Virus record (IMG/VR): IMGVR_UViG_3300042261_002390
Span: 62,001-126,000 of that record
DNA length: 64,000 nt
Reading direction: 5' to 3' (one strand)
Part shown: piece by piece, positions 247 to 62,800 of the stretch
How positions within the stretch are numbered: the first letter of the stretch is position 1
Layout of the letters: the number at the start of each line of letters is the position of its first letter
The notes under the pieces: generated by a model
Seen by the model: the letters and a program-made list of their open reading frames with translations, nothing else
The model's database searches: none
What the model was told of the DNA's origin: nothing
Made by a program: the position numbers and the translations under genes

Positions 247-876
247 ATGATACAAGTAGATAAAATTGAAGACGGATTGCCAGTTAGTGTAATTGTTCCA
301 TTAAGTAAACAAAGAAAGGATTTTTTCGAGAATATGGTTCTACCATTGATTGAAGCAAATGGGGTTAATGAAATCATTATCAACGATGATGAGGGTTCAG
401 CACCTAAAAAAAGAAATGATGGTTTTAAACGTTCTACTCAACCATATGTGTTTTTTTGTGATGATGATATTTTATTGCCAGCAGACTATATTGGAGCATT
501 GTACGAAAAACTTGAAAATAATCCTGATGTTTCATTCGTATATACCGGATATCACGGAATAGTATTATACCCTGAAACACACCCAATGCGTGGAAATTTT
601 CAGATTCCTAATATTGAATTTAATAAGTCTGCATTAATGCAGGGAAATTATATTTCGACCATGACATTAATGCGCCGGGAAGTATTTCCGATGTTTGATG
701 AAAATTTAAAAAGATTACAGGATTGGGATGTCTTTTTAACTATTGTTAAAAATGGTGGCAAGGGAATGCTTGTGCCAAATCAGACATTTTATGCATATTA
801 TTTAGATTCTGGTATTACTTCAAACAACAATAATGAAATTGATGCAGTCTTTGCTATAAGAAAAAAACATTTTTAA
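247..876 (+). CDS. Glycosyltransferase family 2
   Basis: N-terminal VSVIVP strand, PKKRNDG, PYVFFCDDD (DxD), QDWD motif. Confidence 0.85.
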   Translation: MIQVDKIEDGLPVSVIVPLSKQRKDFFENMVLPLIEANGVNEIIINDDEGSAPKKRNDGFKRSTQPYVFFCDDDILLPADYIGALYEKLENNPDVSFVYTGYHGIVLYPETHPMRGNFQIPNIEFNKSALMQGNYISTMTLMRREVFPMFDENLKRLQDWDVFLTIVKNGGKGMLVPNQTFYAYYLDSGITSNNNNEIDAVFAIRKKHF

Positions 877-879
877 ATT

Positions 880-1815
880 GTGAAAAGGTCTAATATCAAT
901 AAAAAAGAATTAATTGCTAGAAAAATTAAATACAGACATGAACAAAATTTGTTTCTGAATAATATGAATGATAGAGATTTAAGACGATTTAATAAAATTG
1001 AACCAAAACCTGATGTAACCGGATTAAGTCGTGGGGATAGACGAAGTGGAAACTATTTGGATTTAGTTGAAAATAATTATATTAAAAAAGAAAATGTCGA
1101 TGTTGATATTGTAATTTGTATTCCATCACACGATAGATATGAAAAATTAAAAAGAATTATTGAACAAATAAAAGATTCTAATTCAAAATATAGTTATTTA
1201 ATTGTTATATTAAATGATGGGTCATCTGATGAAAGATATAATACGTTAGTTAATGAATACCCAAATATTATTCAGATAGTAAATAGCGTTCCGAATGGTA
1301 AAGCATTACACTGGTTTTGTTATAATCAAATGTGGAATGTTTTAAAAGGTTGTATTTGTCATGCTGTTTTACAAATGGATGATGATTTTATATTGTGTGA
1401 CAATTTTCTTGATATAATTGTTGATTTATTTTTTGAAAAGAAAAATGTTAATAGTAGAATTATGGCAATTTCACCTCATCTATGGTCATTTAAAAAAGCT
1501 TGTAAATATGAGTCGTGGTGGAATAGAAATGATTTGATTGATGGTATTGCATTGATTGATTATGATGTTATAAAATATTTGAATTTTGAATTACAGCCAG
1601 TAAATGCTAAGGATGTAATTAAACCGGGTGTACAAGTGAGAGCATGGACACAAATTTCTATGGGAATTAAAATGTATAGAGGCATTATTTTTAGAACATC
1701 CGAATCGTTGGTTTTCCATGACGGTAATGAAGATTCTAAATTACATGGTGATTTTAGAAAAGTAAAAAAAATATATACACATAATTTTATTAATAAAAAT
1801 ATTGAATATGATTAG
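880..1815 (+). CDS. GT-A fold glycosyltransferase with basic N-terminal extension
   Basis: IVICIPSHDR, ILNDGSSD, LQMDDDF motifs; GTG start. Confidence 0.75.
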   Translation: MKRSNINKKELIARKIKYRHEQNLFLNNMNDRDLRRFNKIEPKPDVTGLSRGDRRSGNYLDLVENNYIKKENVDVDIVICIPSHDRYEKLKRIIEQIKDSNSKYSYLIVILNDGSSDERYNTLVNEYPNIIQIVNSVPNGKALHWFCYNQMWNVLKGCICHAVLQMDDDFILCDNFLDIIVDLFFEKKNVNSRIMAISPHLWSFKKACKYESWWNRNDLIDGIALIDYDVIKYLNFELQPVNAKDVIKPGVQVRAWTQISMGIKMYRGIIFRTSESLVFHDGNEDSKLHGDFRKVKKIYTHNFINKNIEYD

Positions 1816-2542
1816 CATAATATTAAATGTTTATAAGAGACCATATATGTTGGAAAAACAGATTGAAGCAATAAAAAATCAATCAATATCCATTAAAAGT
1901 GAAAATATTCATGTTTGGTATAATAATGGCGATGTAGTTCAACATACTCCAAATGATAAAAATATAAAAACATATTTATGTAATTGGAATAGTAAGTTTT
2001 GGGGAAGATTTACACTTCCGTTGTTAATCAGAACACCATATGTTGCAATATTTGATGATGATATTATACCACAAAGGGATTGGTTAAAAAATTGTCTTGA
2101 AACAATTGAAAATCCCACATATAATGGAATTTTAGGTGGTAGCGGTGTAATACTTCGTGATAAATCATATGTGCCATTTAATAAGGTTGGTTGGAATGGT
2201 CAACACTTAAATACTGCAACCCGGGTTGATTTAGTTGGTCATGCTTGGTTTTTTAGACAAGAATGGGCTAAATATTTGTGGTATGAAGAACCTGTTAGCT
2301 GGGAAAACGGTGAAGATATTATGTTTTCGTATCTTGCACAAAAATATGGAAATATTAATACTTTTGTTCCTCCACATCCTGAAAATAATTTAAATTATTG
2401 GAGTTGTGATTTTAAGACTGGTAATGAAGTCGGTAGTGATGTTAATGCTTCGTGGCTTAAAGGTTCACATTATGAACAAAGAAATAAAATTTGTATCAAT
2501 TGTATAAATAATGGTTGGAAAACAGTAAATAATATTAAATGA
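1802..2542 (+). CDS. GT-A fold glycosyltransferase
   Basis: ISIILNVYKRP, YVAIFDDDIIP, GEDIMFSY. Confidence 0.75.
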   Translation: MNMISIILNVYKRPYMLEKQIEAIKNQSISIKSENIHVWYNNGDVVQHTPNDKNIKTYLCNWNSKFWGRFTLPLLIRTPYVAIFDDDIIPQRDWLKNCLETIENPTYNGILGGSGVILRDKSYVPFNKVGWNGQHLNTATRVDLVGHAWFFRQEWAKYLWYEEPVSWENGEDIMFSYLAQKYGNINTFVPPHPENNLNYWSCDFKTGNEVGSDVNASWLKGSHYEQRNKICINCINNGWKTVNNIK

Positions 2543-3228
2543 AAAATTTCAGAGAAGATATATTAATCTTATTTAACTTACTTAAAAATAAAACACCTTT
2601 TAGCTTTAGTAAATATGCTGATGGCGAATATGCAATATTAATAAACAAGCATATTACTAATTGTGATAATTGGACTTTTAATCCTGATATAGATAATATC
2701 TATCAGAATGAGTTGTTTAAATCATTTCAATTTAATGAAGATGGATATTATGTCGGTATATCATGTCCATGTTGTGTAAGTATGGATGATGTACTGTGGA
2801 TGAGAAATAATGTGGGTGTTGATAAAAATCATTTGACTTGGGCAAATATTTTTGTAAATGGTAATTATAGAACTTTTGTAAATCTATTTATACCTGAATT
2901 TAAAAATCATGATATTGTTTTAGTTGCAAACAAAAACGCTAATATTAATAATTTACCTTTTAATGTGGTTGAACACATACCTATTGGAAATACAGCATGG
3001 AAGGAAAATTTTAATTTAGTGAATGAATTACCTGAAAAAGATTATGAGAATAAATTATTTCTTTTTTGTGCAGGACCTCTTGGAAATATGCTTGCAGCTA
3101 AAATGTGGGAAAAAAATAAAAATAACATTTATATTGATATTGGGTCTACGTTAAATCCTTGGTTGGTTGGTAATAATAGAGGATATTTACGTGGTTCTGA
3201 TACACTAAATAAAATATGTATATGGTAG
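2539..3228 (+). CDS. Putative GT-D fold (DUF1792-like) glycosyltransferase
   Basis: SFSKYADGE resembles the RFGDGE motif; LFCAGP and IDIGS near the C-terminus; cluster context. Confidence 0.5.
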   Translation: MKNFREDILILFNLLKNKTPFSFSKYADGEYAILINKHITNCDNWTFNPDIDNIYQNELFKSFQFNEDGYYVGISCPCCVSMDDVLWMRNNVGVDKNHLTWANIFVNGNYRTFVNLFIPEFKNHDIVLVANKNANINNLPFNVVEHIPIGNTAWKENFNLVNELPEKDYENKLFLFCAGPLGNMLAAKMWEKNKNNIYIDIGSTLNPWLVGNNRGYLRGSDTLNKICIW

Positions 3229-3809
3229 AAATGAATAGTTTTAATGTTGTTGATTTTAGATTTGCTAAATCAACCGATGATTTTGATTTAAAATATAGAG
3301 CGTGGTCGAGAATATATGAATATCAATATGTTTTAGATTTCATTCGTAATACCCAAATAGAGTCCCCAAATATTCATAATTCTTCATGGGGTTATGAGGG
3401 TGTACACGTAATTTTTAGAGACGAATTGGATTTGATTGGTAAATGTACTCATTCAGATATTATTCATTCTGAATTTCGTGATACTTTTTATTATGATATT
3501 ACTACAGAGAATAATGAATTCGAAAATAAGTTCGATTTTGTTATAAATATCTCAACAATAGAACATTTAAAAACATCTGAAGATAGATTGACATCAATTA
3601 AGAACTTATTTAAACAAGTGAAGCCGGGTGGATATTTAATACTAACTTTTGACTATCCCCGGGTGAATTTGACTGAGATTGAGTTTTTAATTAATAAAAA
3701 ATGTACTCGTGGTGGAAATAAAGAGTTAAATGGGTCAAATTCAAAAATTGTTGACGAAAGGTATAAAGACTTAAATATAGTTTATTTAATATTGAAAAAA
3801 AATGAATAA
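3216..3809 (+). CDS. Class I SAM-dependent methyltransferase
   Basis: KFDFVINISTIEHL and VKPGGYLILTFD. Confidence 0.75.
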   Translation: MYMVEMNSFNVVDFRFAKSTDDFDLKYRAWSRIYEYQYVLDFIRNTQIESPNIHNSSWGYEGVHVIFRDELDLIGKCTHSDIIHSEFRDTFYYDITTENNEFENKFDFVINISTIEHLKTSEDRLTSIKNLFKQVKPGGYLILTFDYPRVNLTEIEFLINKKCTRGGNKELNGSNSKIVDERYKDLNIVYLILKKNE

Positions 3810-4362
3810 TTATTGGAATGATAGATATGTTGCCGGGGGTAATTCCGGGGCAGGTTCATATGGTGAATATGCTGTGCATAAGGCTGATGTGATTAATTAT
3901 TACATTGAAAAATATGAAATTAAAACCATATCGGATTTTGGATGTGGTGATGGTAATCAAATTAGTTTATTAACTGGATTTGAAAAATATGCTGGGTGTG
4001 ATATTTCTCCACGTATTATTGAAGTATGTAAGAAGAGGTTTGAAAACGATAAAAGATATTCGTTTTACGGTTATATTCACCAAATGCCTAGTGCTGACCT
4101 ATGTATGTCCCTTGATGTAATATATCACATTATGGATTATGGTGATTATGAAACGTATTTGGCTACACTGTTTGAAAAATCAGACAATTATGTATTAATT
4201 TTTTCATCAAATCATGATAGAAAAGTTGAGACTGTTTCTCACATACATCATAGGATTTTTACTAAGTTTGTCGATGAATTTGTGCCAAACTTTAAGCTTG
4301 TCGAGGAAATTGAAAATAACTTAAACACATCAGCGAAATTTTTTTTATACGAAAAAATATGA
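3802..4362 (+). CDS. Class I SAM-dependent methyltransferase
   Basis: DFGCGDG motif I, DLCMSLDVIYH, YWNDRY..GGNSGAGS N-terminus. Confidence 0.8.
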   Translation: MNNYWNDRYVAGGNSGAGSYGEYAVHKADVINYYIEKYEIKTISDFGCGDGNQISLLTGFEKYAGCDISPRIIEVCKKRFENDKRYSFYGYIHQMPSADLCMSLDVIYHIMDYGDYETYLATLFEKSDNYVLIFSSNHDRKVETVSHIHHRIFTKFVDEFVPNFKLVEEIENNLNTSAKFFLYEKI

Positions 4363-5369
4363 TACTAATTTCATACGGTACTCGCCCGGAGTACATCAAA
4401 CTTAAATCAATATTCAAGGAATTTGATAAAGTAGGTATTAAATATTGTACATTATTTACCGGGCAACATAAAGATTTACTTAACGAACATTCACCTACAA
4501 TATCGTTGAATATTGATGATAGTAGCAAAATTCTTGATAATAGATTAAATAATATTGTATCGTCCATAGTTAAAAGTAATTTTTTCTATAGTCTTAGTGA
4601 ATTTCCAACATATGTGATGGTAATGGGTGATACTACATCTGCAATGGCTGTTGCATTATCAGCATTCCATCACGGTATTAAAGTAATTCATCTTGAAGCC
4701 GGGTTAAGAACATATGATAATCAAAATCCATACCCTGAAGAAATTAATCGACGAATTATATCGCAAATCACTTCAATTCATCTATGCCCAACTAATTGGA
4801 ATCTTCAGAATTTAAAAAATGAGTCGATTATCATGGAAGAAGCATATGTTGTAGGTAATACTGTGATTGATAATTTATTAGATTACAAAGATAAATGTGA
4901 ATATACTAATAAAGTGTTGATTACACTCCATAGACGTGAAAATCATTCAATAATACGTGAATGGTTTAACGTTATTAACAATATAGCAAAAAATCATCCA
5001 GAAATCGAATTTATCCTCCCGATACATCCAAATCCTAGGGTTCAGGTTCACCGTAATATATTAACAAATGTTAACGTTATTGAGCCGCTTTCTTATGATG
5101 ATATGTTGAATTTATTGGTTAAAACTAAGCTTGTTATTACTGATAGTGGCGGGTTACAAGAAGAATGTAGTTTTTTTAATAAAAGATGTTTAGTCTGTCG
5201 TAAAACCACAGAAAGACCTGAAGCTATTGGATTAAGTAGTATTATGGTTGAAACACCATTATTGTTATCATTGTACTTTGATAAGTATATAAATAATTAC
5301 GAAATTGATTATAAATGTCCGTTTGGAGATGGATATGCAGCAGAAAAAATAGCGGAGATATTAAAATGA
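4359..5369 (+). CDS. wecB: UDP-N-acetylglucosamine 2-epimerase (non-hydrolysing)
   Basis: GTRPEYIK, TGQH, GDTTSA, HLEAGLRT, PEEINR, TLHRREN, TDSGGLQEE, PFGDG. Confidence 0.95.
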   Translation: MILISYGTRPEYIKLKSIFKEFDKVGIKYCTLFTGQHKDLLNEHSPTISLNIDDSSKILDNRLNNIVSSIVKSNFFYSLSEFPTYVMVMGDTTSAMAVALSAFHHGIKVIHLEAGLRTYDNQNPYPEEINRRIISQITSIHLCPTNWNLQNLKNESIIMEEAYVVGNTVIDNLLDYKDKCEYTNKVLITLHRRENHSIIREWFNVINNIAKNHPEIEFILPIHPNPRVQVHRNILTNVNVIEPLSYDDMLNLLVKTKLVITDSGGLQEECSFFNKRCLVCRKTTERPEAIGLSSIMVETPLLLSLYFDKYINNYEIDYKCPFGDGYAAEKIAEILK

Positions 5370-6127
5370 AAAGAGTATTAGTTATTGGTGATAGTTGTAC
5401 AGATATTTTTATATACGGTAAGTGTGATAGGTTATGCCCCGAAGCACCTGTACCAATTTTCATTCCCGAAAATACCGTTTACAATGGTGGTATGACAATT
5501 AATGTGTATGAAAATTTAAGAGCATTAGGTATATGTTGTGACATATTAACAAATGATATTAGACCTGTGAAGACAAGATATGTTGATTCTGTTTCGAATC
5601 AATTATTACTCCGGGTTGATGAAAAAGATGTTATTAGACGAATTAATCCTGCAGATTTATCACGTTTTAAGTTAGAAAATTATGATATAATAGTAATTAG
5701 CGATTATAATAAAGGATTTTTAACTATCGAAGATATTGAATATATTTCTGAAAGAAATAAAAATGTTTTTATTGATAGTAAGAAAAAATTCGCAGAATGG
5801 TGTCATCACATCAAGTTTATTAAAATAAATGAAAAGGAATATCTGTTGAATGAAAATTACCTAAAAAATGAATATTTTGGTAATTTAATTGTAACTAAGG
5901 GTAAAGATGGGGCAGTATTAAATAATGAGCAAGTATTTTCAATTGATGAAGAACATGATGTTAGAGATTTAAGTGGTGCTGGTGATACTTTTTTTGCAGC
6001 ATTAGTTGCAGATTATTTAAATAATAACGATATTTGTAGTGCAATTAAGTATGCAAATAAATGCGCATCATGGGCAGTTACGCAAAAAGGTGTTGTAAAA
6101 ATTGATTTAGATAAAGCCAAGATATGA
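5366..6127 (+). CDS. rfaE1: Heptose-7-phosphate kinase (PfkB family, HldE kinase-domain type)
   Basis: VIGD..D..G..RL.PEAPVP, SDYNKG, DLSGAGDTF. ATG at 5366 overlapping the wecB stop preferred over the 5315 start. Confidence 0.85.
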   Translation: MKRVLVIGDSCTDIFIYGKCDRLCPEAPVPIFIPENTVYNGGMTINVYENLRALGICCDILTNDIRPVKTRYVDSVSNQLLLRVDEKDVIRRINPADLSRFKLENYDIIVISDYNKGFLTIEDIEYISERNKNVFIDSKKKFAEWCHHIKFIKINEKEYLLNENYLKNEYFGNLIVTKGKDGAVLNNEQVFSIDEEHDVRDLSGAGDTFFAALVADYLNNNDICSAIKYANKCASWAVTQKGVVKIDLDKAKI

Positions 6128-6498
6128 TATATATATTAAACTCAGACGATTGTGAAAAAGTCCCTAAAAATTGGGGTGAAGAAATAATTCTTCACAATAG
6201 TGATAAATATTGTGGTAAACTACTGCGATTTAATCGTGGTGCTAAATTTAGCATGCATTTTCATATATTAAAGGAAGAAACTTGGTATATTAATAAAGGC
6301 GAATTTCAAATTAATTACATAAATCCTGAAAATGCCGATAAATTCAGTAAAATATTAACAGAAGGAATGGTTATTGAAATTGAAAAAGGAAATCCACATC
6401 AATTGATTGCATTGACTGATGGTGAAATTTTTGAAGTTTCAACCCAACATTTTGATGATGATAGTTATAGAATTGAAAAAGGAGATAGTCAATCATGA
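6124..6498 (+). CDS. Cupin-fold protein (sugar-phosphate isomerase-like)
   Basis: K.WG.E, SMHFH..KEETW, PHQL, EVST cupin motifs. Confidence 0.7.
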   Translation: MIYILNSDDCEKVPKNWGEEIILHNSDKYCGKLLRFNRGAKFSMHFHILKEETWYINKGEFQINYINPENADKFSKILTEGMVIEIEKGNPHQLIALTDGEIFEVSTQHFDDDSYRIEKGDSQS

Positions 6499-6926
6499 AT
6501 ATTTGGGTAAATGGGTGTTTTGATATATTACATCCCGGACATATTGATTTATTATGGTATGCTAAGTTATACAATACTGATAATGTGTCGTTAAAAGACG
6601 CAATGTCGGTAAATAGATTATATGTTGGCTTGGATAGTGATGAACGTGTTAAATTTTTAAAAGGCGATAAACGACCCATAAATGATATTGGCGTTCGTGT
6701 TAAAATGATGTCTAATTTAATTATGGTAGATTCAGTAGTTTCATTTTCTGATGAAGCAGAATTAGAATATTACATAAAAACATTTAACATTGATTATATG
6801 ATTATTGGTAATCAATATGTTGATAAATATATTGTGGGTGCTGAATTTGCTAAAAACGGTGTTGTTTATTATCCAGTTAATGAATATTCTACAACTAATA
6901 TTATCGATAAAATTAAAAATTTATGA
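6495..6926 (+). CDS. rfaE2: Heptose-1-phosphate adenylyltransferase (cytidylyltransferase-like)
   Basis: NGCFDILHPGH, GLDSD..V..LKG..RPI, YSTT. Confidence 0.85.
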   Translation: MNIWVNGCFDILHPGHIDLLWYAKLYNTDNVSLKDAMSVNRLYVGLDSDERVKFLKGDKRPINDIGVRVKMMSNLIMVDSVVSFSDEAELEYYIKTFNIDYMIIGNQYVDKYIVGAEFAKNGVVYYPVNEYSTTNIIDKIKNL

Positions 6927-7831
6927 TTATAGTTACTGGTGGTGAGGGGTTTATTGGTAAAAATTTAATTAAAATGCTTAAAGCATGCGGATATAATGAT
7001 GTGGTTTCTCTCGATATTATATCAAAATCACTTGATGATATTTATGAATTTTTATTTGATAATTCAGACAATATTGATTGCGTTTTTCATTTGGGTGCTA
7101 TTAGTGATACTACGGTATTCGATAAAAATATGTTGCATATTTATAACGTCTCCTCATCAATATTCATGTGGAATTTTTGTTCATTAAAAAAAATACCTTT
7201 AATATACGCTAGTTCTGCAGCCACTTATGGTGATGGTAGTAATGGATTTGATGATGAATCATCTATTGATGTATTAAAACCATTGAATCCTTATGGTAAT
7301 TCAAAACAAGAATTTGATATGTGGATATTGAAGACACGTAGCCGACCACCATATTGGTATGGATTAAAATTTTTTAATGTTTATGGATTTGGCGAAGCAC
7401 ACAAAGGTAGAATGGCATCTATGGTATATCATTCGTTTAATCAAATAGAGTGCACTGGTATGATTAAATTATTCAAATCACATAATCCAAATTTTGAGGA
7501 TGGTGGACAATCAAGAGATTTTATTTACATTGATGATGTGGTAAATGTCTGTATTAATGTGATGAAAAATAAACCAGAATCTGGTATTTATAATGTAGGT
7601 ACGGGTAAAGCACGTAGTTTTAATGATTTAGCTAAAGCAGTTTTTAATTCTCTTGGAATTCAAGAAAATATTATATATATTGACACACCCATTGATATTA
7701 GAGATAAATATCAGTATTTTACTGAGGCAAATATCAATAAATTAATAAAAAGTGGTTGTAGTGTTAATTTTCATGAGTTAGAAGATGGAATTTTAAAATA
7801 TATTAATATGTTGAAATATGAAAATAGCTAA
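6923..7831 (+). CDS. hldD: ADP-L-glycero-D-manno-heptose 6-epimerase
   Basis: IIVTGGEGFIG, FHLGAISDT, YASSAATYG, PLNPYG.SK, GLKFFNVYG..E.HKGRMAS, RDFIY, YQYFTEA. Confidence 0.92.
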   Translation: MIIVTGGEGFIGKNLIKMLKACGYNDVVSLDIISKSLDDIYEFLFDNSDNIDCVFHLGAISDTTVFDKNMLHIYNVSSSIFMWNFCSLKKIPLIYASSAATYGDGSNGFDDESSIDVLKPLNPYGNSKQEFDMWILKTRSRPPYWYGLKFFNVYGFGEAHKGRMASMVYHSFNQIECTGMIKLFKSHNPNFEDGGQSRDFIYIDDVVNVCINVMKNKPESGIYNVGTGKARSFNDLAKAVFNSLGIQENIIYIDTPIDIRDKYQYFTEANINKLIKSGCSVNFHELEDGILKYINMLKYENS

Positions 7832-8453
7832 CATCGTTTATGAAAAGAATCTGGTAAATCATACCAAAGTAGATTACGTTAATTACATTAATGATGCTGT
7901 AAAATATGTAAATCTTGACACTTCGTTACCCACATTATATGTTGGTTGGTCATTTATGAAGCAATGTAATCCTGATAATGAGATTATCCAAAATGCTAAT
8001 ATTTTATATAAAAAAATAATCACAAATGAACTGTATTGGGAATTTAGTTTTGACGAAAGCAAACCATCTCATGTAAAGGGAGTTGAATTATTTGTTAACA
8101 ATACTCCTAATTTTTATTTTTCATCAAAATATCAATATATTAATTTAGACCCGGTATTCTTTCAATTAGCTTATATTGAGGATTTAATGTATGTAATTCC
8201 AAAACAAATTGATTCTATATATGTGTATAAGAATGAGATGGTATATATATTGTTTGAAAATAAAATATGGGGCATTAATTTAAAAATGTATGAATTTTTT
8301 AAGTTTAATATTGATGAAATATTGAAAAACTTAATGGAAAGAACTACACACTCAAAAGTTGACGATACCGGAGAAATATTCCAGAAATACTACAAAATAT
8401 TCCCTAATTATATTCACTTAAAAAGATATATTGTTACAATTTTGACAAAATGA
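7818..8453 (+). CDS. Hypothetical protein
   Basis: 211-aa ORF overlapping the hldD stop; no recognisable motif. Confidence 0.7.
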   Translation: MKIANIVYEKNLVNHTKVDYVNYINDAVKYVNLDTSLPTLYVGWSFMKQCNPDNEIIQNANILYKKIITNELYWEFSFDESKPSHVKGVELFVNNTPNFYFSSKYQYINLDPVFFQLAYIEDLMYVIPKQIDSIYVYKNEMVYILFENKIWGINLKMYEFFKFNIDEILKNLMERTTHSKVDDTGEIFQKYYKIFPNYIHLKRYIVTILTK

Positions 8454-19280: not shown

Positions 19281-19406
19281 AATAATTTGTAAATTTTTAT
19301 AAAAAATTGTAACTTTTTTAAAACTCATACGTAGGTATATATCACAAGCATATTGAAAAAAATAAAAAAATTTTTAAAAAATGCTTGCAGATTGAAATAA
19401 AGGTGT

Positions 19407-19414
19407 TATATTTG
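19407..19414 (+). promoter_or_regulatory. Bacteroidota-type promoter driving the RNA island
   Basis: TATATTTG with TTG at 19385-19387. Confidence 0.75.
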
Positions 19415-19459: not shown

Positions 19460-19591
19460 GGGGAAGTATGCGAATAAAAAACAAAGAATATAGTCGTAAT
19501 ACTCCTACGGAGAACTGGTTATGTTTTCAGTAAAGGTACAGCAATTTGTGTTGAAAACAAATGTTTGTGGGTTCAACTCCCGCCTTCCCCA
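19460..19591 (+). ncRNA. tRNA-like RNA 1 (anticodon-position UGA) with ~60-nt D-loop insertion
   Basis: Acceptor GGGGAAG/CTTCCCC, D stem TGC/GCA, anticodon stem TTTGT/ACAAA with loop GTTGAAA, 5-nt variable loop, T arm GTGGG-TTCAACT-CCCGC. Confidence 0.8.
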
Positions 19592-19642
19592 CCGATGGTC
19601 ATTTTTTGTACTTTTTAGTATTTATATTAAAAAGTATATAAT

Positions 19643-20314
19643 ATGGCTAGAATTGAAAAAAAATATCATTTCATATATAAAACAACATGTATGTTAAATG
19701 ATAGGTATTATTTTGGAATGCATTCTACCGACAATATAAATGACGGATATATGGGTTCTGGAAGAAGATTAAAACGTTCATTGAAAAAATATGGTAAAGA
19801 AAATCATATCGTTGAAATTATTGAATTTTTACCTGACAGAAAATCACTTTTTCTTAGAGAAAAAGAAATTGTTAGCTTAAATGAAATTGCTAAAAAAAAT
19901 TGCATGAATTTAAAAGTTGGCGGTGATGGTGGGTTCTCTAGTGAACAGCATAGAATAAAATTTTTTGAAAAAGCAAGTGAATATTCAAAAATTAATTCAT
20001 TACTTGCTGTTAAACGTAAAGTCGAAATCCGTAAAAACAATCCAAATTGGCAGTTGGATTTAAATCGTAAGACTGGTGAAGGTGTTAGAAAATATTATCG
20101 TGATAATAATATTGTTGGTAGTTTTTATGGAAAAAAACACAGTGAACTATCTAAGGAAAAAATCAGTAAAACAAATAAAATAGTTCTTGCTGGAACAGGT
20201 AATTCACAATATGGCACACGTTGGATTACAAACGATATTGATAATAAAAAAATAATGAAAAATGATAATCTGCCAGATGGTTGGCATTATGGTAGAATTA
20301 TAAAGAAATTATAA
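19643..20314 (+). CDS. GIY-YIG (Seg-like) homing endonuclease with NUMOD3-like motif
   Basis: FIYKTT...YYFGMHST...DGYMGSG, FYGKKHSELSKEKIS. Confidence 0.85.
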   Translation: MARIEKKYHFIYKTTCMLNDRYYFGMHSTDNINDGYMGSGRRLKRSLKKYGKENHIVEIIEFLPDRKSLFLREKEIVSLNEIAKKNCMNLKVGGDGGFSSEQHRIKFFEKASEYSKINSLLAVKRKVEIRKNNPNWQLDLNRKTGEGVRKYYRDNNIVGSFYGKKHSELSKEKISKTNKIVLAGTGNSQYGTRWITNDIDNKKIMKNDNLPDGWHYGRIIKKL

Positions 20315-20335
20315 AGGAAACTGATTGTTATTTCA

Positions 20336-20408
20336 GTACAATTAACTCAGTGGGTAGAGTATTTGCCTATCAAGCGAAACGCCGTTGGTTCAAATCCAGC
20401 ATTGTAAA
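20336..20408 (+). tRNA. Atypical tRNA, anticodon ATC (Asp-like), possibly non-functional
   Basis: Cloverleaf: GTACAAT/ATTGTAA (1:72 mismatch), D ACTC/GAGT, anticodon TTTGC-CTATCAA-GCGAA, T GTTGG-TTCAAAT-CCAGC; no CCA. Confidence 0.7.
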
Positions 20409-20448
20409 ACAATAGATAACAAACGAAATATCCTTTTTAAAAATATAT

Positions 20449-20532
20449 TGTGGGATAGTGTAATTGGTAACATATTGGGCTCATAACCCAAAGACAGTAA
20501 TGCTAGTGAAGGTTCGATTCCTTCTCCCGCTA
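20449..20532 (+). tRNA. tRNA-Met(CAT), initiator-type, with 16-nt variable region
   Basis: 1:72 mismatch, anticodon stem TTGGG/CCCAA with three G-C pairs, loop CTCATAA, T arm GAAGG-TTCGATT-CCTTC. Confidence 0.85.
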
Positions 20533-20580
20533 CCGGGGTCATTTTTGAAATTACAAGTATTTATATGAAAAATATAAATC

Positions 20581-21249
20581 ATGAGTAATTACAATGACAA
20601 CAAAAAGTATCATTTCATATATAAGACAACTAATATTCTAAATGGTTCATATTATATTGGAATGCATTCCACAAATAATATCAGCGATGGGTATTTGGGA
20701 AGTGGAAAAAGAATAAAACGTTCTTTGAAGAAATATGGTAAAGATAACTTCAAATTTGAAATTTTAGAATTTACTGAAAATCGTAAAATGCTGATTGAGC
20801 GAGAAATTGCTATAGTAAACTCCGATGTCTTGAAAGATAAACTATGTTTAAACTTGAAAGAAGGTGGTTGTGGTGGATTATGTAATGAAACACATTCTAA
20901 AAATTTTCATGCTGCTGGTGGAAGAAAAGTACGTGAGTATTTTAGAGAAATTCACGCCAATAGAATGAAAAATGATGCTGAATATCATGAAAAATGGAAA
21001 ATTGCGTATAAAAATGCAATTGGCTCTCGTAAAGGAGACACTAATCCATTTTATGGTAGAAAACATGATGATGAGTGGAAAAAAACAATTAGCGATATTA
21101 TGAGAGTAAAACAATCAGGAACTAATAATTCTCAATATAATACTTGTTGGATTACTAATGAAATTGAGAATAGGAAAATAAAAAAAGATGAAATAGTTCC
21201 AGTTGGTTGGAGATTCGGTAGAAATTTGAAGATATTGAAAAAACAATGA
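20581..21249 (+). CDS. GIY-YIG (Seg-like) homing endonuclease, paralog of the 19643 ORF
   Basis: FIYKTT...YYIGMHST...DGYLGSG, NPFYGRKH, NSQY.T.WITN. Confidence 0.85.
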   Translation: MSNYNDNKKYHFIYKTTNILNGSYYIGMHSTNNISDGYLGSGKRIKRSLKKYGKDNFKFEILEFTENRKMLIEREIAIVNSDVLKDKLCLNLKEGGCGGLCNETHSKNFHAAGGRKVREYFREIHANRMKNDAEYHEKWKIAYKNAIGSRKGDTNPFYGRKHDDEWKKTISDIMRVKQSGTNNSQYNTCWITNEIENRKIKKDEIVPVGWRFGRNLKILKKQ

Positions 21250-21373
21250 ATTAGTAAGCGATTCAGTAATGGAGAGAGTAATTGCTGCAAATTGTTGAAC
21301 ATGAAAAGGCTGGTAGACCGTAAATTATTTCTCAGTAGTGCCTCACATAACCTCAATGACAATTACTAATTTA
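21247..21373 (+). ncRNA. Candidate structured RNA
   Basis: AATTAGTAA (21249-57) pairs with TTACTAATT (21363-71); inner GAGAGAGTAATT/AATTATTTCTC helix. Confidence 0.4.
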
Positions 21374-21384
21374 TTCAAACAAAT

Positions 21385-21519
21385 GGAGAAGTAGCAAAGT
21401 GATAAACAAGAAATACTATCTCAATGCTCTTGAAAAAAGAGAACTAATGGTGTTTTCAGTAAAGGTAATGCAATTGTGTTGAAAACAATCTATCGGTGGT
21501 TCAAATCCATCCTTCTCCG
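21385..21519 (+). ncRNA. tRNA-like RNA 2 (anticodon-position UGA) with ~60-nt D-loop insertion
   Basis: Acceptor GGAGAAG/CTTCTCC, D stem GCA/TGC, anticodon ATTGT-GTTGAAA-ACAAT, T arm GGTGG-TTCAAAT-CCATC; same architecture as 19460-19591. Confidence 0.8.
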
Positions 21520-21523
21520 CATT

Positions 21524-21880
21524 ATGCTCAGTCAAGCCTCTTATTCGAAAGAATAATGTAACTGGGCGAAAGACCTGATTCCCGCTAGTCCCTGAAGAAA
21601 TTCAAACTGGTGGGTACGGTTTAAAAATATTAGGGAAAACGTAAAGTGTTTACAGTAACATCGGTTCGACTCCGATATTGTTCGCCAAAAAATGAGCGAT
21701 TAGCCAAGTGGTTAAGGCACAAGTCCGTTAAACTTGCAAAAGAAAAGAATACTTTAAAATTGTTCCCAAAACTTATTGATTTTTGGCTGTTGGTGTCAGT
21801 GTTTTTTTAAAAAATGGGGCGCACCACCTAACATTTGATGGTTAAGAATGGTTTTTCGTCGCTAACGAGTGACTTTTTTT
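21524..21880 (+). ncRNA. Structured RNA containing a circularly permuted tRNA-like module (21660-21736); Y RNA (YrlA)-like candidate
   Basis: T arm, then acceptor 3' strand + GCCA, 6-nt linker, acceptor 5' strand, D arm, GTT anticodon hairpin; extra hairpins; ends at a terminator. Confidence 0.6.
21858..21880 (+). terminator. Intrinsic terminator
   Basis: GTCGCT-aacg-AGTGAC plus T7. Confidence 0.7.
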
Positions 21881-21895
21881 CAAAAAAGATGAATT

Positions 21896-22087
21896 TTAAC
21901 TATGAAAAAGGAGTAGATAGTGAAGCCGGGAGAGCGTTAACTCAAGGGTGCACACTAAGGATAAGCAGCAATGCTCAACTCTCTAATGGTGTGTGAAGCA
22001 CATATATTGTCGCCCGAAAGGATAAAAGAATGGCGTATGTGGTTAGCAAGATTCCTGATAAAAGCTATTGAGTAGTTAATTTTTTTT
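21896..22087 (+). ncRNA. Candidate ~185-nt structured RNA
   Basis: Ends pair (TTAACTA/TAGTTAA); internal CACATA/TATGTG; GCAA- and GAAA-capped hairpins; T8 after. Confidence 0.45.
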
Positions 22088-22269
22088 ACTGAAGAACTTG
22101 TTGTGTATGCAGTAAATTGAAATTTGTCGCCCATGATGGTGGCGACACAAACTTACAAGATACAACAGAACTTCTTCTCAATATTAGAGAAGCAGTGTTT
22201 TTCTGAAAAAACAAGTGGGCGGGGAACTCGACGTGGAAACGTGTCGAAGTACTTCGTCCATTTTTTTTT
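22088..22269 (+). ncRNA. Candidate structured RNA(s) or leader upstream of the vWA gene
   Basis: TTGTTGTGT/ATACAACAG, GTCGCC/GGCGAC, CTTCTC/GAGAAG; then a long hairpin TGGGCGGGG...CTTCGTCCA plus T9. Confidence 0.5.
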
Positions 22270-59865: not shown

Positions 59866-62800
59866 ATGGAAATAAATAAATTAAGTGTTTTAAGTGAAAT
59901 CAAAGGATTTCTTGAAGGATATAATGATGAATTAAAATATTTGGTAAATGTCGAGACAGATTCTAAATCTGCAGTAGCTGAATGTGTAATTCATCCACCC
60001 GGAGAAAAACCTAAAATTATAAGAGTGGTTTATGAACCATTCATGTATATGAAAGATTTGTCGAAGCATAATGTTGAACTATATGCCGGACATTCTGAAT
60101 CGTATATTAAGAGTATGCAAATCAAGCACGGTATTACAATCACCAAGTTAAAAACAGGTAATCAAAAAAGGATGGTTAATGGCTATTGCTATAAGCTAAC
60201 AAGCTATAAATCATATACTAATATTATAAATTATATTCGTGATGGAGGTTTGAATCCATATGAAAAAGGCGTTGATGAAAATGGTAATTTTTTAAGGGAT
60301 GCTAAGGGTGAATTTGTCTATCCATATCGTGATTTATTTTATGCACCTAGAACTACTGAACAGTTTTTTATTAGCAAAAAAGCTCGTTTGTTTAAAGGTT
60401 TTGAGGAATATAAAAATGTTCACAAAGTAACATTTGACATTGAAACAACTGGTTTGAGATATCAAATGTCAAGAGTATTTGCTATTGGTGTTAGGGATAA
60501 TCGTGGGTTTGAAACAATACTTGAAGTCGAAAAATTGAATGACGATGAATCTGAAGTTAAGTTAATCCAAGATTTTTACAACCTTATAAACATATTACAA
60601 CCCGCAGTTATATCTGGTTATAATTCAGAAGAATTTGACTTTGAATTTTTATTGGGTAGAGCAAAGATATTGGGTATGGATATGGATAAATTGCCCACTA
60701 CCCTTAAAGATGGAGAACATCTAAAAAGAATTCCCAATACTTCAGTAAAATATGGAAATAGTGCAGATAAATATACTGCAACAAATATGTGGGGATATTC
60801 TGTTATCGATATTATTCATGCTTCGAAAAAAACAGCAGCAATTAATACTGAGGTTAAGGCAACTGGTTTGAAGTACATCGCAAAACATGAAAAAATTGCA
60901 AAACCAAATAGAACATACATTAAGGGTGAAGATAATTCGATAGGTAGATTCTATAGTGAAAATAAAATATTTTTGATTGATGAGAATAATGGTTATGTTC
61001 AAATACCTGATGAATTTCAACAAATAGGTAATAAGTTCTATACGCTTCAAGCTAATAAGAATAGATTGAGTGAAGCTGATTATAAAAATCTGAGAGTAAA
61101 ATACTTAGATAGTGATAAAGAGTTTGTCGCTTGGTTTAGAACTATGCCACCAACTATGAACAAATTTATTACAGGTAGGAAAATTGTTAGACAATATTTG
61201 CTTGATGACTTATGGGAAACCGAACAAGTTGATGAATTGTATAACCAGTCATCATTCATGTTGGCAAAAATTATTCCCACAACATATCATCGTGTATGTA
61301 CGATGGGTACTGCAGCAATTTGGAATTTATTGCTTACTGCATGGAGTTATGAGAATGACTTAGCGATTCCAGAATGTGATGTTCAGGATAGATTTTCTGG
61401 TGGTTTGGCTAGATGTTATAAGGTTGGATATTCAACTCGTATCATTAAGATTGACTACGCATCGTTGTATCCTATGATTCAGTTGACCGATAACGTATTT
61501 CCGATGTTTGATATCACCGGGGTTATTAAAAAAATGTTATTGTATTTGACAACTACACGTAATATCTATAAAAAATTAGCGAGTAAGACTAAACTGAATG
61601 ATGAAGAAGTTAAACTGTTGGAACAGATTGACCGTGAGGTACATGTTAAATATTTGAATAATGCATTTACACCGGAAGATATTGCGATGTTTAAGATTAA
61701 ACAATTACCAATTAAGATTTTGAACAACTCGTTGTTCGGTGCATTGGGTTCGGCAATATCATTCAATTGGTCTGATAATACTTGTGCTGCTAGGATTACG
61801 TGTACAGGTAGGTTACATTTAAGACACGCTATTGACTGGTTTAGTAAATTTGGTTGTATTGCATTACTTGCTGTAACAGATGGTATTAACTTTAGTTTTC
61901 CTGAGAAGACAACCATACGTGTTACTGATGAGGGAATAACTGAGGGAGTAAATGAGGGAGTAATCGAAGAAATGTGGCAATATGGTGGTAAGACCGGAAT
62001 CTCTGCATTGATTGAAAAATATAATAAAGAAGAAATGAAGCCACCATTTATGGCTGTTGATGATGATGGTGAATCGTTATCTTGTTTAAATCTCTCTCGT
62101 ATTAATTATGCTACATTGGCATTGGAGAAGGATAAAAAAACTGGTGAAATGAAAGAAAAAGTCAAATTAACTGGTAATACTATTAAATCTAAAACGATGC
62201 CGGAATATATTGAAGAATTTATTGATAAAGGATTGAATATGATTCTTCACGGACAGGGTAAAGAATTTGTTGAATATTATTATGACTATTGTGATAATAT
62301 TCGTTACATGCAAATTCCATTGAAAAAGATTGCTAGTAAGAGTAAAATTAAGACTACATTAGCTGCATACCGTAAACGTGGTAAGGATAAGAATGGTAGA
62401 GAAAAAGGTATGCAGGCACACATGGAATTATTGTTGGAGAAACGAGATAAATTGTGTGAAGAATTGTTTGAAAAACATAAAGATAATTTCGATTTAAAAA
62501 AATACGAAAAGAAGGGTATTACCATAGAAGATAAAATGAAATTAGTTTCAGACTATATGCCACCAGAACCACCGTTGGATAGCGTAGTGTATTATGTGAA
62601 TACTGGTTACAAAAAATCACATGGCGATTCTAGAATGATTACTGATAAATTTACTGGCAAAGAAAGATTTTGTGCAACTTTAATTGATACTGAAGATTTG
62701 ATTGAAAATCCAAATATGCTTGGTGGATATAATTATGAAAAATATTTAGATGCATTCAATAAGCGTGTTGAAACACTATTGGCAGGATTTGACGTTGAAA

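Follow-up and report, generated by a model that had tools for sequence, protein, structure and literature searches.

Two RNAs of about 133 nt, encoded in a phage tRNA cluster, are conserved tRNA-shaped molecules that carry a two-helix arm of about 60 nt in the D-loop, and the same arm is a portable module that also bridges a circularly permuted tRNA gene next door. We found no description of this architecture for bacterial viruses. The RNAs lie at positions 19460-19591 (TLR1) and 21385-21519 (TLR2), both on the + strand, of a 64,000-nt stretch (the window; positions 62,001 to 126,000 of IMG/VR record IMGVR_UViG_3300042261_002390). An earlier note, made from the sequence alone, had described them as two paralogous cloverleaves with a conserved structured D-loop insertion, and that observation is confirmed. 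Its interpretation is supported only in part, as set out below.

Both elements are full cloverleaves with an insertion of about 62 nt between the D stem and G18G19. They align over 137 columns with 95 identical, and the differences are compensatory: acceptor pair 3:70 is G-C in one and A-U in the other, T-stem pairs change on both sides, the D stem is UGC/GCA versus GCA/UGC, and the inner hairpin is CUCC/GGAG versus CUCUU/AAGAG. Both anticodon loops read GUUGAAA. Each RNA folds better than its dinucleotide shuffles (z -3.07 and -2.90). In TLR1 the acceptor strands are at 19460-66/19584-90, followed by U8 and A9, with the D stem at 19469-71/19541-43, the anticodon arm at 19545-61 (loop 19550-56), a 5-nt variable loop, the T arm at 19567-83 and the discriminator A at 19591. 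Its insertion (19473-19534) consists of an A-rich 5' linker, helix H1 (19485-94/19518-27), helix H2 (19502-05/19509-12), the joining sequence AACU (J3') and a 3' linker CAGUAAA. In TLR2 the acceptor is at 21385-91/21512-18, the D stem at 21394-96/21469-71, the anticodon arm at 21473-89 (loop 21478-84), the T arm at 21495-511 and the discriminator G at 21519, with an insertion (21398-21463) that has an A-rich linker, H1 (21410-19/21447-56), H2 (21427-31/21437-41), AACU and CAGUAAA.

Standard tools miss these RNAs, which at 132 and 135 nt are longer than the 70-95 nt of a canonical tRNA. ARAGORN, and Rfam at gathering score, find only the two ordinary tRNAs that lie between them. A permissive Rfam search (E up to 10, over 18.5-24.5 kb) gave nothing beyond weak tRNA and tmRNA hits, namely a partial tRNA match (RF00005) for TLR2 of 26.7 bits against a cut-off of 29, and a tmRNA match for TLR1 of 18.8 bits (E 1.3e-4) against a cut-off of 47. 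However, when the insert is deleted in silico both become sequences that ARAGORN calls, mostly as tRNA-Ser(tga) of 72-79 nt, in 33 and 55 of 60 deletion variants respectively. A blastn search of both elements against 50,697 GenBank phage records gave no match, and a scan of genome contigs with a 23-base TLR pattern gave no hits in 185,579 species, so there is no prophage or host clue.

A covariance model finds 63 homologues (62 distinct) in 50 sources, nearly all of them contigs of uncultured phages; TLR1 scores 133.4 bits and TLR2 142.7 bits. The homologues keep all five helices, with 97.9% of cells paired against 49-58% with slid partners, 22 of 29 pairs changed on both sides, and 0 of 500 shuffles reaching the covariation score. 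The acceptor, anticodon and T stems and both arm helices covary. The D stem also covaries, as UGC/GCA, GCA/UGC, GAUU/AAUC and GUUU/AAAC directly after nt 9, so that nt 1-13 and the 3' part belong to one fold with the insert in place, although the commonest type-B D stem has only 2 Watson-Crick pairs. U8 A9 is present in 61 of 63, and the GG of the D-loop and a GUUCRA T-loop are kept. An unsupervised search of the alignment for further covarying column pairs returned only the known helices plus subtype-correlated noise. The family has three scaffold types. TLR1 and TLR2 represent two old ones, A and B, which coexist in several related phages, so that the description as paralogues in the earlier note is right and understated. 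The covariation fully supports its view that this is selected structure rather than decay, and its picture of a tRNA body with an appendage fits the anatomy.

Two points need correcting. The insertion is not a private feature of these two RNAs: it is a modular element (H1 of 9-10 bp, H2 of 4-7 bp, invariant AACU and CAGUAA) that is found five times in this RNA cluster, closed inside the two D-loops and split as leader and trailer in the other three cases. One split copy encloses an ordinary-length tRNA (20313-20436, +; tRNA at 20336-20408, anticodon AUC), with a leader of H2 AAAGGA, AACU, H1 strand and UUCAGUA (20313-38) and a trailer of the H1 strand (20416-24) and H2 UCCUUU (20431-36); the leader-trailer helix was recovered by RNAalifold on three loci. 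Another, at 22091-22178 (+), has a GAAGAA...CAGUAA leader and a UUCUUC trailer around a G+C-rich hairpin that is not a tRNA, and is conserved in five related loci (L003, L032, L051, L010 and L021). The third surrounds a circularly permuted tRNA unit at 21633-21767 (+). Its order is module 3' half (21633-58), T arm (21660-76), acceptor 3' strand (21677-83), G, CCA (21685-87), linker (21688-93), acceptor 5' strand (21694-700), D arm (21703-18), anticodon arm (21720-36, loop CCGUUAA) and module 5' half (21748-67). Among 35 distinct permuted units with 19 acceptor pair types, 6.94 of 7 acceptor pairs form in cis against 4.1 across units, and NCCA is always encoded, which points to a used 3' end. 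The complementarity of the 5' acceptor strand of the window's permuted unit to its own trailer does not covary in other loci, and we take it as coincidence.

The second correction concerns the identity as Ser, which the earlier note read from the anticodon UGA and which is unproven. The variable loop is 5 nt rather than the long arm of bacterial tRNA-Ser, and the discriminator is A in TLR1, G in TLR2 and A in 49 of 63 family members, including most type-B copies, whereas bacterial tRNA-Ser has G73. The anticodon loop keeps 7 nt, with A37 in 58 of 59 and A38 in 52 of 59, but the triplet is hypervariable: type B is UGA in 27 of its 41 copies and type A is GUA in 8 of 16. These loops match those of bacterial tRNA-Ser(UGA) and tRNA-Tyr except at positions 32 or 33; U33 is present in only 40 of 59 and G32 in 26 of 59, both window copies having G32 and U33. 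In two loci (L101 and L156) several copies on near-identical scaffolds in one phage differ only in the loop. Loops with G or A at 34 and U at 35 avoid U33-G34-U35, with 1 exception in 19 contiguous bodies and none in 10 permuted units, either because N33 is not U or through a change of G34 to A. Codon use in the window (AAU 1382, UAU 875, GAU 855, AAA 817, UCA 478) matches the anticodons carried.

We tentatively propose, as the best of several readings but with slightly less than even confidence, that TLR1 and TLR2 belong to a phage-specific family of L-shaped, tRNA-derived RNAs that act as substitute tRNAs, here reading UCA or UCN, and that keep the arm. In this view they are made from one polycistronic small-RNA operon (19.4-22.3 kb in the window), RNase P and 3' trimming plus CCA addition would free their ends, and the anticodon would be re-tuned from phage to phage towards the A/U-ending codons that the phage uses most and towards host tRNAs that get destroyed, with loops edited so that anticodon nucleases and tRNA-guanine transglycosylase do not recognise them. 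The arm, with its invariant AACU, CAGUAA and AAAC, leaves the body in the 5' part of the D-loop beside the 15:48 pair, close to where a class II long variable arm emerges, and most likely serves as a common handle for maturation, stabilisation or recognition by one dedicated host or phage protein. The structure, the family, the modularity and the anticodon pattern are established by the analysis, whereas aminoacylation, decoding, retention of the arm and the identity of what binds it are inferred from sequence alone. The proposal is helped by the absence of any insertion-less type-B allele in IMG/VR, and by documented phage tRNAs that escape tRNA-targeting defences through loop changes (PMC10264068, PMC11555353). 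It is weakened by the fact that one scaffold carries anticodons of a dozen amino acids, which ordinary synthetase identity rules do not easily allow, by the loss of U33 and frequency of G32, and by the possibility that a bulky arm could clash on the ribosome or with EF-Tu. The presence of the module around a non-tRNA hairpin and an ordinary tRNA suits a processing signal at least as well. In addition, nt 4-10 pair alternatively with the module, and this pairing covaries, which the model does not explain.

An alternative, which we consider unlikely, is that the module is an intron-like or processing element that is removed: an unidentified endonuclease would cut at its conserved borders (AAAC... 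and ...CAGUAA) and a ligase would join the flanks, giving normal 72-nt tRNAs from TLR1 and TLR2 and, from the permuted gene, a circular intermediate that RNase P then opens. It might instead be a cleavage site of RNase III type that merely punctuates the polycistronic transcript. The topology does match that of intron versus permuted intron-exon, each leader-trailer pair has its own H2 sequence, the borders are invariant, deletion of the insert gives sequences that ARAGORN accepts, the segment complementary to nt 4-10 resembles an exon-binding guide, and H1, an asymmetric internal loop and H2 together resemble phage RNase III sites in size. However, the excisable D-loop intron offered in the earlier note has no positive support, although it is not excluded. 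An insert of about 62 nt cannot hold a group I or II core (more than about 200 nt), no Rfam ribozyme or intron matches even at E up to 10, and no bulge-helix-bulge (3-4-3) geometry can be drawn, since H1 is 9-10 bp with long single-stranded linkers. Pfam and PHROGs searches of about 30 window proteins recognised no RNA ligase, kinase-phosphatase, splicing endonuclease, other RNase or synthetase, and the conserved neighbours, a 541-aa protein and an ARPP-1 protein, gave no RNA-related lead. The spacing from CAGUAA to the cargo varies by 0-6 nt, which is awkward for exact splicing, D-stem covariation includes nt 11-13, beyond the guide-like pairing, and there is no insertion-less allele of the kind noted above. 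Comparison of the module by eye with hammerhead, hairpin, twister, pistol and hatchet cores, the k-turn and the 11-nt receptor gave no convincing fit, and a pseudoknot between ACU of J3' and AGU of CAGUAA was rejected because it would have to span a 9-bp helix with no linker.

It is also possible, though again unlikely, that the RNAs are tRNA mimics that do not decode, acting as uncleavable decoys or sponges for host tRNA-targeting defence nucleases or other tRNA-binding factors, or as tRNA-shaped domains of a larger ribonucleoprotein built on the shared module. The hypervariable loops on constant scaffolds, the loss of U33 and gain of G32, the weak top of the acceptor stem in the enclosed ordinary tRNA, the lack of an encoded CCA in TLR1 and TLR2, and the attachment of the module to a non-tRNA hairpin would fit this, as would the conservation of the whole 2.8-kb non-coding cluster at nucleotide level between phages whose proteins are only about 60-75% identical; T4 RNAs C and D still have no assigned role (PMC3014915). 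On the other hand, the triplets track the phage's most used codons and A34 variants fit NAU codons, which a decoy does not need, a decoy should copy the target loop, UGU included, and the permuted tRNA keeps an encoded CCA next to a perfect acceptor stem. A miniature tmRNA or tmRNA-like rescue RNA, suggested by the weak Rfam match and by the GGGG acceptor with A73, is very improbable and already contradicted: ARAGORN finds no tmRNA, pair 3:70 is G-C or A-U and not G3:U70, there are no pseudoknots and no conserved reading frame after the 5' part (frames differ between homologues), and a complete anticodon arm is present. Decaying pseudogenes disrupted by insertions, or chance similarity, might be suspected from the homing endonuclease genes in the cluster and the failure of tRNA finders, but are refuted by compensatory changes in every helix, including those of the insert.

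A more speculative and rather unlikely reading, which would be of great interest if true, is that the module is the signal of an undescribed RNA cutting-and-joining (or cutting-and-holding) system in bacterial viruses, allowing tRNA bodies to be encoded interrupted, as in TLR1 and TLR2, or circularly permuted, as in the neighbouring gene, with maturation through ligated or circular intermediates or through stable two-piece tRNAs. This would be a bacterial-world counterpart of archaeal and algal tRNA splicing, built on a different motif.

We found no close precedent. The nearest analogue is bacteriophage T4 species 1 RNA (rnaC, with rnaD), a stable RNA of about 139 nt (reportedly sequenced as a stable species of ~140 nt) encoded in the phage tRNA cluster beside a GIY-YIG seg gene, whose role is unassigned (PMC3014915). 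It folds into an acceptor-like stem, a long hairpin where the D arm should be, an anticodon-like arm and a canonical T arm, but only this gross layout is alike: there is no detectable sequence or model similarity, the model (R1) hitting only ordinary T4 tRNAs in that region and not rnaC or rnaD in locus L058, and T4 is not known to have a repeated module, a permuted tRNA or family-wide anticodon variation. Class II tRNAs (bacterial Ser, Leu, Tyr) share an extra helical arm on an L-shaped body, a short D stem followed by a purine13-A22 mismatch, and, for Ser UGA and Tyr GUA, the predominant anticodons of types B and A; in the permuted neighbour the module sits exactly in the variable region. 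In TLR1 and TLR2, however, the arm is in the D-loop and not between positions 44 and 48, is 2-3 times longer, has long single-stranded linkers and an invariant sequence, and is shared between different tRNA bodies. Ectopic tRNA introns and circularly permuted tRNA genes of archaea and algae (Cyanidioschyzon merolae, prasinophytes, Thermofilum) also show D-loop insertions, a 3' half before the 5' half, and pairing of leader and trailer (PMC4090602, PMC9602550), but depend on a bulge-helix-bulge motif and the archaeal or eukaryal splicing endonuclease, which bacteria are not known to have. Here the motif is different and the initiator-like tRNA of the cluster has a bacterial-type 1:72 mismatch, and no bacterial or phage case turned up in our literature searches. 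Two-piece tmRNA from permuted ssrA genes is a bacterial precedent for the permuted unit, in that the CCA end lies upstream of the 5' acceptor strand and removal of a short intervening stretch gives a two-piece tRNA-like molecule, but it is tmRNA rather than a tRNA with D and anticodon arms, and has no shared module. The phage tRNAs that escape defence nucleases have non-canonical loop positions matched to those nucleases (PMC10264068; for tRNA-Tyr and retron effectors, PMC11555353), but are ordinary 75-nt tRNAs, and systematic avoidance of U33-G34-U35, an accessory arm and permutation are not described there.

tRNA-like RNAs with an extra domain have been known in phage T4 for fifty years without a function, and the present family is large and rich enough in covariation to make the question testable. 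Its hypervariable triplet on a fixed scaffold, near-complete avoidance of U33-G34-U35, and A34 for NAU codons link it to the fast-moving field of tRNA-targeting antiphage defence and phage counter-tRNAs. If the RNAs decode, the scaffold is a natural generic tRNA whose identity follows the anticodon or the arm, which is of interest for orthogonal translation, and if the module is processed, it reveals a new RNA maturation route. Because standard tRNA finders miss all of these genes, phage tRNA inventories are probably incomplete.

It is worth adding some details of the cluster. Two ORFs resembling GIY-YIG/NUMOD3 homing endonucleases (Pfam) are inserted in it, at 19643-20314 (+), where the ORF is present in only some related loci, and at 20581-21249 (+). 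The second ordinary tRNA, at 20449-20534 (+), is an initiator-like tRNA(CAU) with a U1xU72 mismatch, here with a 16-nt variable arm and no module. A promoter-like TTG-N19-TAnnTTTG, of the Bacteroidota-type consensus, lies upstream of the cluster at 19385-19414 (+), and the same TAnnTTTG box lies upstream of the type-A RNA in L032 and L051; however, the motif is not enriched across the window (4 matches against 2.9 expected), so that both this inference and the host assignment are weak. Finally, ARAGORN calls of 'tRNA-Leu(taa)' inside two of the loci (L063 and L123) are an alternative fold of the 3' two-thirds of a type-B RNA without a proper D arm, and we treat them as spurious.

The window is a phage segment of 31% G+C, with nearly all of the long ORFs on the + strand. 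Searches with Pfam and PHROGs recognise a UvsX/RecA-like recombinase, a 5'-3' exonuclease and a DnaB-like helicase upstream of the RNAs studied here. Sugar-modification genes are recognised at the left end, where positions 247-8453 hold a run of glycosyltransferase, methyltransferase, UDP-GlcNAc 2-epimerase, sugar kinase and NAD-dependent epimerase genes, a block that is unusual in size for a phage. Most of the other proteins have no family. The helicase has no close relative among 50,697 GenBank phage records, the best match being 27% identity to an uncultured 484-kb phage. Between the helicase gene and a conserved 541-aa ORF lies a stretch of 3 kb (19.3-22.3 kb), which holds no conserved ORF apart from two GIY-YIG/NUMOD3 homing-endonuclease-like genes. 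This stretch is a small-RNA cluster. The two homing-endonuclease-like genes (19643-20314 and 20581-21249) are inserted between the RNA genes, and in related loci they are present at different places, or absent, as with segB in the T4 tRNA cluster.

The two tRNA-like RNAs, TLR1 (19460-19591) and TLR2 (21385-21519), are as described in the earlier note, and the observation of two cloverleaves with an insertion in the D-loop therefore holds. Each has a 7-bp acceptor stem, U8 A9 and a 3-bp D stem, then an insertion of about 62 nt, followed by the D-loop GGUA, an anticodon arm with the loop GUUGAAA, a 5-nt variable loop, a canonical T arm and a discriminator base. ARAGORN and Rfam at gathering score see neither RNA, but removal of the insert in silico makes ARAGORN call both, mostly as tRNA-Ser(tga). 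Both RNAs also occur, sequence-identical, in IMG/VR loci from a 246-kb and a 35-kb contig.

An exact 16-mer from the conserved 3' border was used to search IMG/VR, and found 12 distinct homologues. RNAalifold gave the same five helices, with 14 of 29 pairs compensated. A covariance model, together with a second scan using a looser border motif, raised this to at least 63 hits in 50 sources, 62 of them distinct. In the alignment of these hits, 97.9% of cells form standard pairs, against 49-58% when the partners are slid, 22 of 29 pairs change on both sides, and no shuffle reaches the observed covariation score. Rfam 15 has no matching family, and literature searches found no description of these RNAs, although a 2023 catalogue of about 8,500 unnamed IMG/VR structure candidates might contain the family without characterisation (PMC10690425).

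Three scaffold types appear, which are distinguished by their 5' ends. Type A begins GGGGAAG UA UGCG and has TLR1 as its window member, type B begins GGGGAGA UA GCAA and has TLR2, and type C begins GGGGGAG UA GAUU and has no member in the window. Types A and B coexist in several phages (the related IMG/VR loci L014, L032, L051, L085, L110, L118 and L142), and the pair is therefore an old duplication. The D stem covaries directly after nt 9, as UGC/GCA, GCA/UGC, GAUU/AAUC and GUUU/AAAC. The first thirteen nucleotides and the 3' part thus belong to one fold with the insert in place. All of the loci are syntenic, in the order helicase, RNA cluster, 541-aa gene and ARPP-1 gene, with protein identity mostly 60-75%. 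No copy was found in representative genomes of 185,579 bacterial and archaeal species, and no type-B allele without the insert was found in IMG/VR.

The insert is a portable module. Its 3' half has the form (G)AGAACU-N4-6-GUNUUUWCAGUAA, and this occurs five times in the window (19511, 20316, 21440, 21635 and 22093) and nowhere else convincingly. It occurs 3-7 times in every related cluster, always on the coding strand. The module consists of a helix H1 of 9-10 bp, an asymmetric internal loop with an invariant AACU on the 3' side, a second helix H2 of 4-7 bp, an A-rich 5' linker containing AAAC, and a 3' linker UUCAGUAA. In TLR1 and TLR2 a variable loop closes H2 and the tRNA ends are open, while in three other units the module is open at H2 and its halves act as leader and trailer.

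The first of these split units (20313-20436) surrounds an ordinary-length tRNA (20336-20408). The leader H2 strand AAAGGA pairs with the trailer UCCUUU, and an H1 of 8-9 bp forms. The orthologues of this tRNA carry at least 15 different anticodons across loci, among them UCA and UUA, and the top one or two acceptor pairs are often mismatched. Another unit (22091-22178) surrounds a non-tRNA hairpin with a variable G+C-rich stem. Here H2 is GAAGAA/UUCUUC, and the unit is conserved in most clusters, just before a terminator-like hairpin. The remaining unit (21633-21767) surrounds a circularly permuted tRNA. Each leader-trailer pair has its own H2 sequence, so that the pairing is specific and not a by-product of tandem repeats.

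In the permuted tRNA, the order along the RNA is the module 3' half, the T arm, a 7-nt acceptor 3' strand, the discriminator, CCA, an A/U-rich linker of 3-18 nt, a 7-nt acceptor 5' strand, UA, the D arm, the anticodon arm, an A-rich linker and the module 5' half. There are 35 distinct units in related loci (for example L003:3240-3391 and L061:1252-1403), and across these there are 19 different acceptor pair combinations. The acceptor stem covaries, and on average 6.94 of 7 positions pair within a unit, against 4.1 of 7 between units, and NCCA is encoded in every unit. RNAalifold recovers H2, H1 and the T, D and anticodon arms. The split module closes the unit at the variable-loop position, and stands exactly where a class II variable arm would be. 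We found no report of permuted tRNA genes in bacteria or phages, the known cases being algal, nucleomorph and archaeal.

The anticodon loop is 7 nt in 59 of 63 TLRs, with A37 in 58 and A38 in 52, but the triplet is hypervariable. In type B it is UGA in 27, followed by UUG, GUA, UGG, UUA, AUU, CGA, UAA, CAU and UUC. In type A it is GUA in 8, AUG in 3, UUA in 2, UUC in 2 and UGA in 1, the single UGA being TLR1 of the window. Near-identical scaffolds within one phage differ only in the loop (loci L101 and L156). The permuted tRNA carries mostly CUU and GUU or AUU, the latter two mostly with G73. The codon use of the window is AAU 1382, UAU 875, GAU 855, AAA 817 and UCA 478. This matches the anticodons carried, and A34 would read the dominant NAU codons by Watson-Crick pairing.

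Loops with G or A at position 34 and U at position 35 would read Tyr, His, Asn or Asp codons, and in the tRNA-like bodies of the clusters such loops almost never contain U33-G34-U35. Either position 33 is A, G or C (CAGUAAA, CGGUAAA, CCGUUAA, ACGUCAA), or position 34 is A (CUAUUAA, CUAUGAA, CUAUCAA). There is one exception among 19 contiguous bodies and none among 10 permuted units. UGU in a 7-nt loop is the recognition element of bacterial tRNA-guanine transglycosylase, and the triplet is also the recognition signal of colicin E5-type anticodon nucleases, which cut between positions 34 and 35 of exactly these four tRNAs.

The structural claims are solid, whereas the function, including any aminoacylation or decoding and the retention of the arm, is inferred. 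The interpretation in the earlier note, of a tRNA body with a protein-binding appendage or an excisable D-loop intron, is supported only in part. We favour, tentatively, the proposal that these RNAs are substitute tRNAs that keep the arm. All tRNA tertiary signatures and a strict 7-nt loop with A37 and A38 are maintained. The triplets follow codon use, and the loops look edited against a specific nuclease and modification signal, which fits published work on phage tRNAs and tRNA-targeting immunity (PMC10264068, PMC11555353, PMC13056530). The permuted neighbour keeps an encoded CCA. In addition, types B and A are, by their anticodons, mainly Ser and Tyr, the tRNAs that normally need an extra arm, and on structural reasoning alone an arm leaving the D-loop after position 15 would emerge next to the 15:48 pair, close to the base of a class II variable arm. 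T4 species 1 RNA, which still has no assigned role (PMC3014915), folds with the same layout. This shows that a phage can encode such an RNA, and the T4 RNA is reported to accumulate unspliced.

However, one scaffold with a dozen anticodons is hard to reconcile with synthetase identity rules, U33 is often absent, and the same module flanks RNAs where it must lie outside the mature product. It therefore remains possible, although we consider it unlikely, that the module is an excised or cleaved processing element, and a role as a non-decoding mimic or decoy is also doubtful but slightly more plausible. The intron proposal lacks a catalytic core, a bulge-helix-bulge shape, recognisable enzymes and intron-less alleles. 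The closed-versus-split topology is nonetheless exactly that of intron versus permuted intron-exon.

It is worth adding that nt 4-10 of the TLRs (for example GAGAUAG) are complementary to a segment inside the module (CUAUCUC), which overlaps the distal end of H1 and the 5' junction strand, a feature that we cannot readily explain. In the window, the complementary segments are 19463-19469 with 19499-19505, and 21388-21394 with 21415-21421. The two covary across the family, with GAGUUAG matched by CUAACUC in locus L032, GAAGUAG by CUACUUC in L136, GGAAUAG by CUAUUCC twice in L119, and GGAGUAG by CUACUCC in type C. This pairing excludes the acceptor stem and H1, and may be a co-transcriptional folding intermediate or a guide-like contact. 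In loci L063 (7792-7877) and L123 (1660-1745), ARAGORN calls an 86-nt 'tRNA-Leu(taa)' inside type-B RNAs, using the H2 3' strand as the acceptor 5' strand and UUUAC-AGUAAAG-GUAAA as the anticodon arm. This alternative fold is probably spurious, but it shows that the H2 3' strand resembles the 5' end.

The cluster contains further conserved elements. An initiator-like tRNA(CAU) with a U1xU72 mismatch (20449-20534) is present in nearly every related cluster surveyed, and in the window and a few other phages (loci L093, L130 and L155) it carries a variable arm of 13-16 nt, which is unusual for a Met tRNA. A non-coding stretch at 21769-22085 is conserved at nucleotide level in loci L003, L021, L032 and L051, examples being GGCUGUUGRURYCAG and GGGGCRYAYCACCUAACAUUUGA...GGUUAAGAAUGG. 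It has no Rfam match, and is probably one or more additional structured RNAs. Finally, a conserved segment of ~65 nt (GAACAUGAAAAGGCUGG...CUCAGUAGUGCCUCACAUAACC) lies before TLR2 in the window (21296-21362) but after the type-B RNA in L003 (3165-3230), which points to rearrangement inside the cluster.
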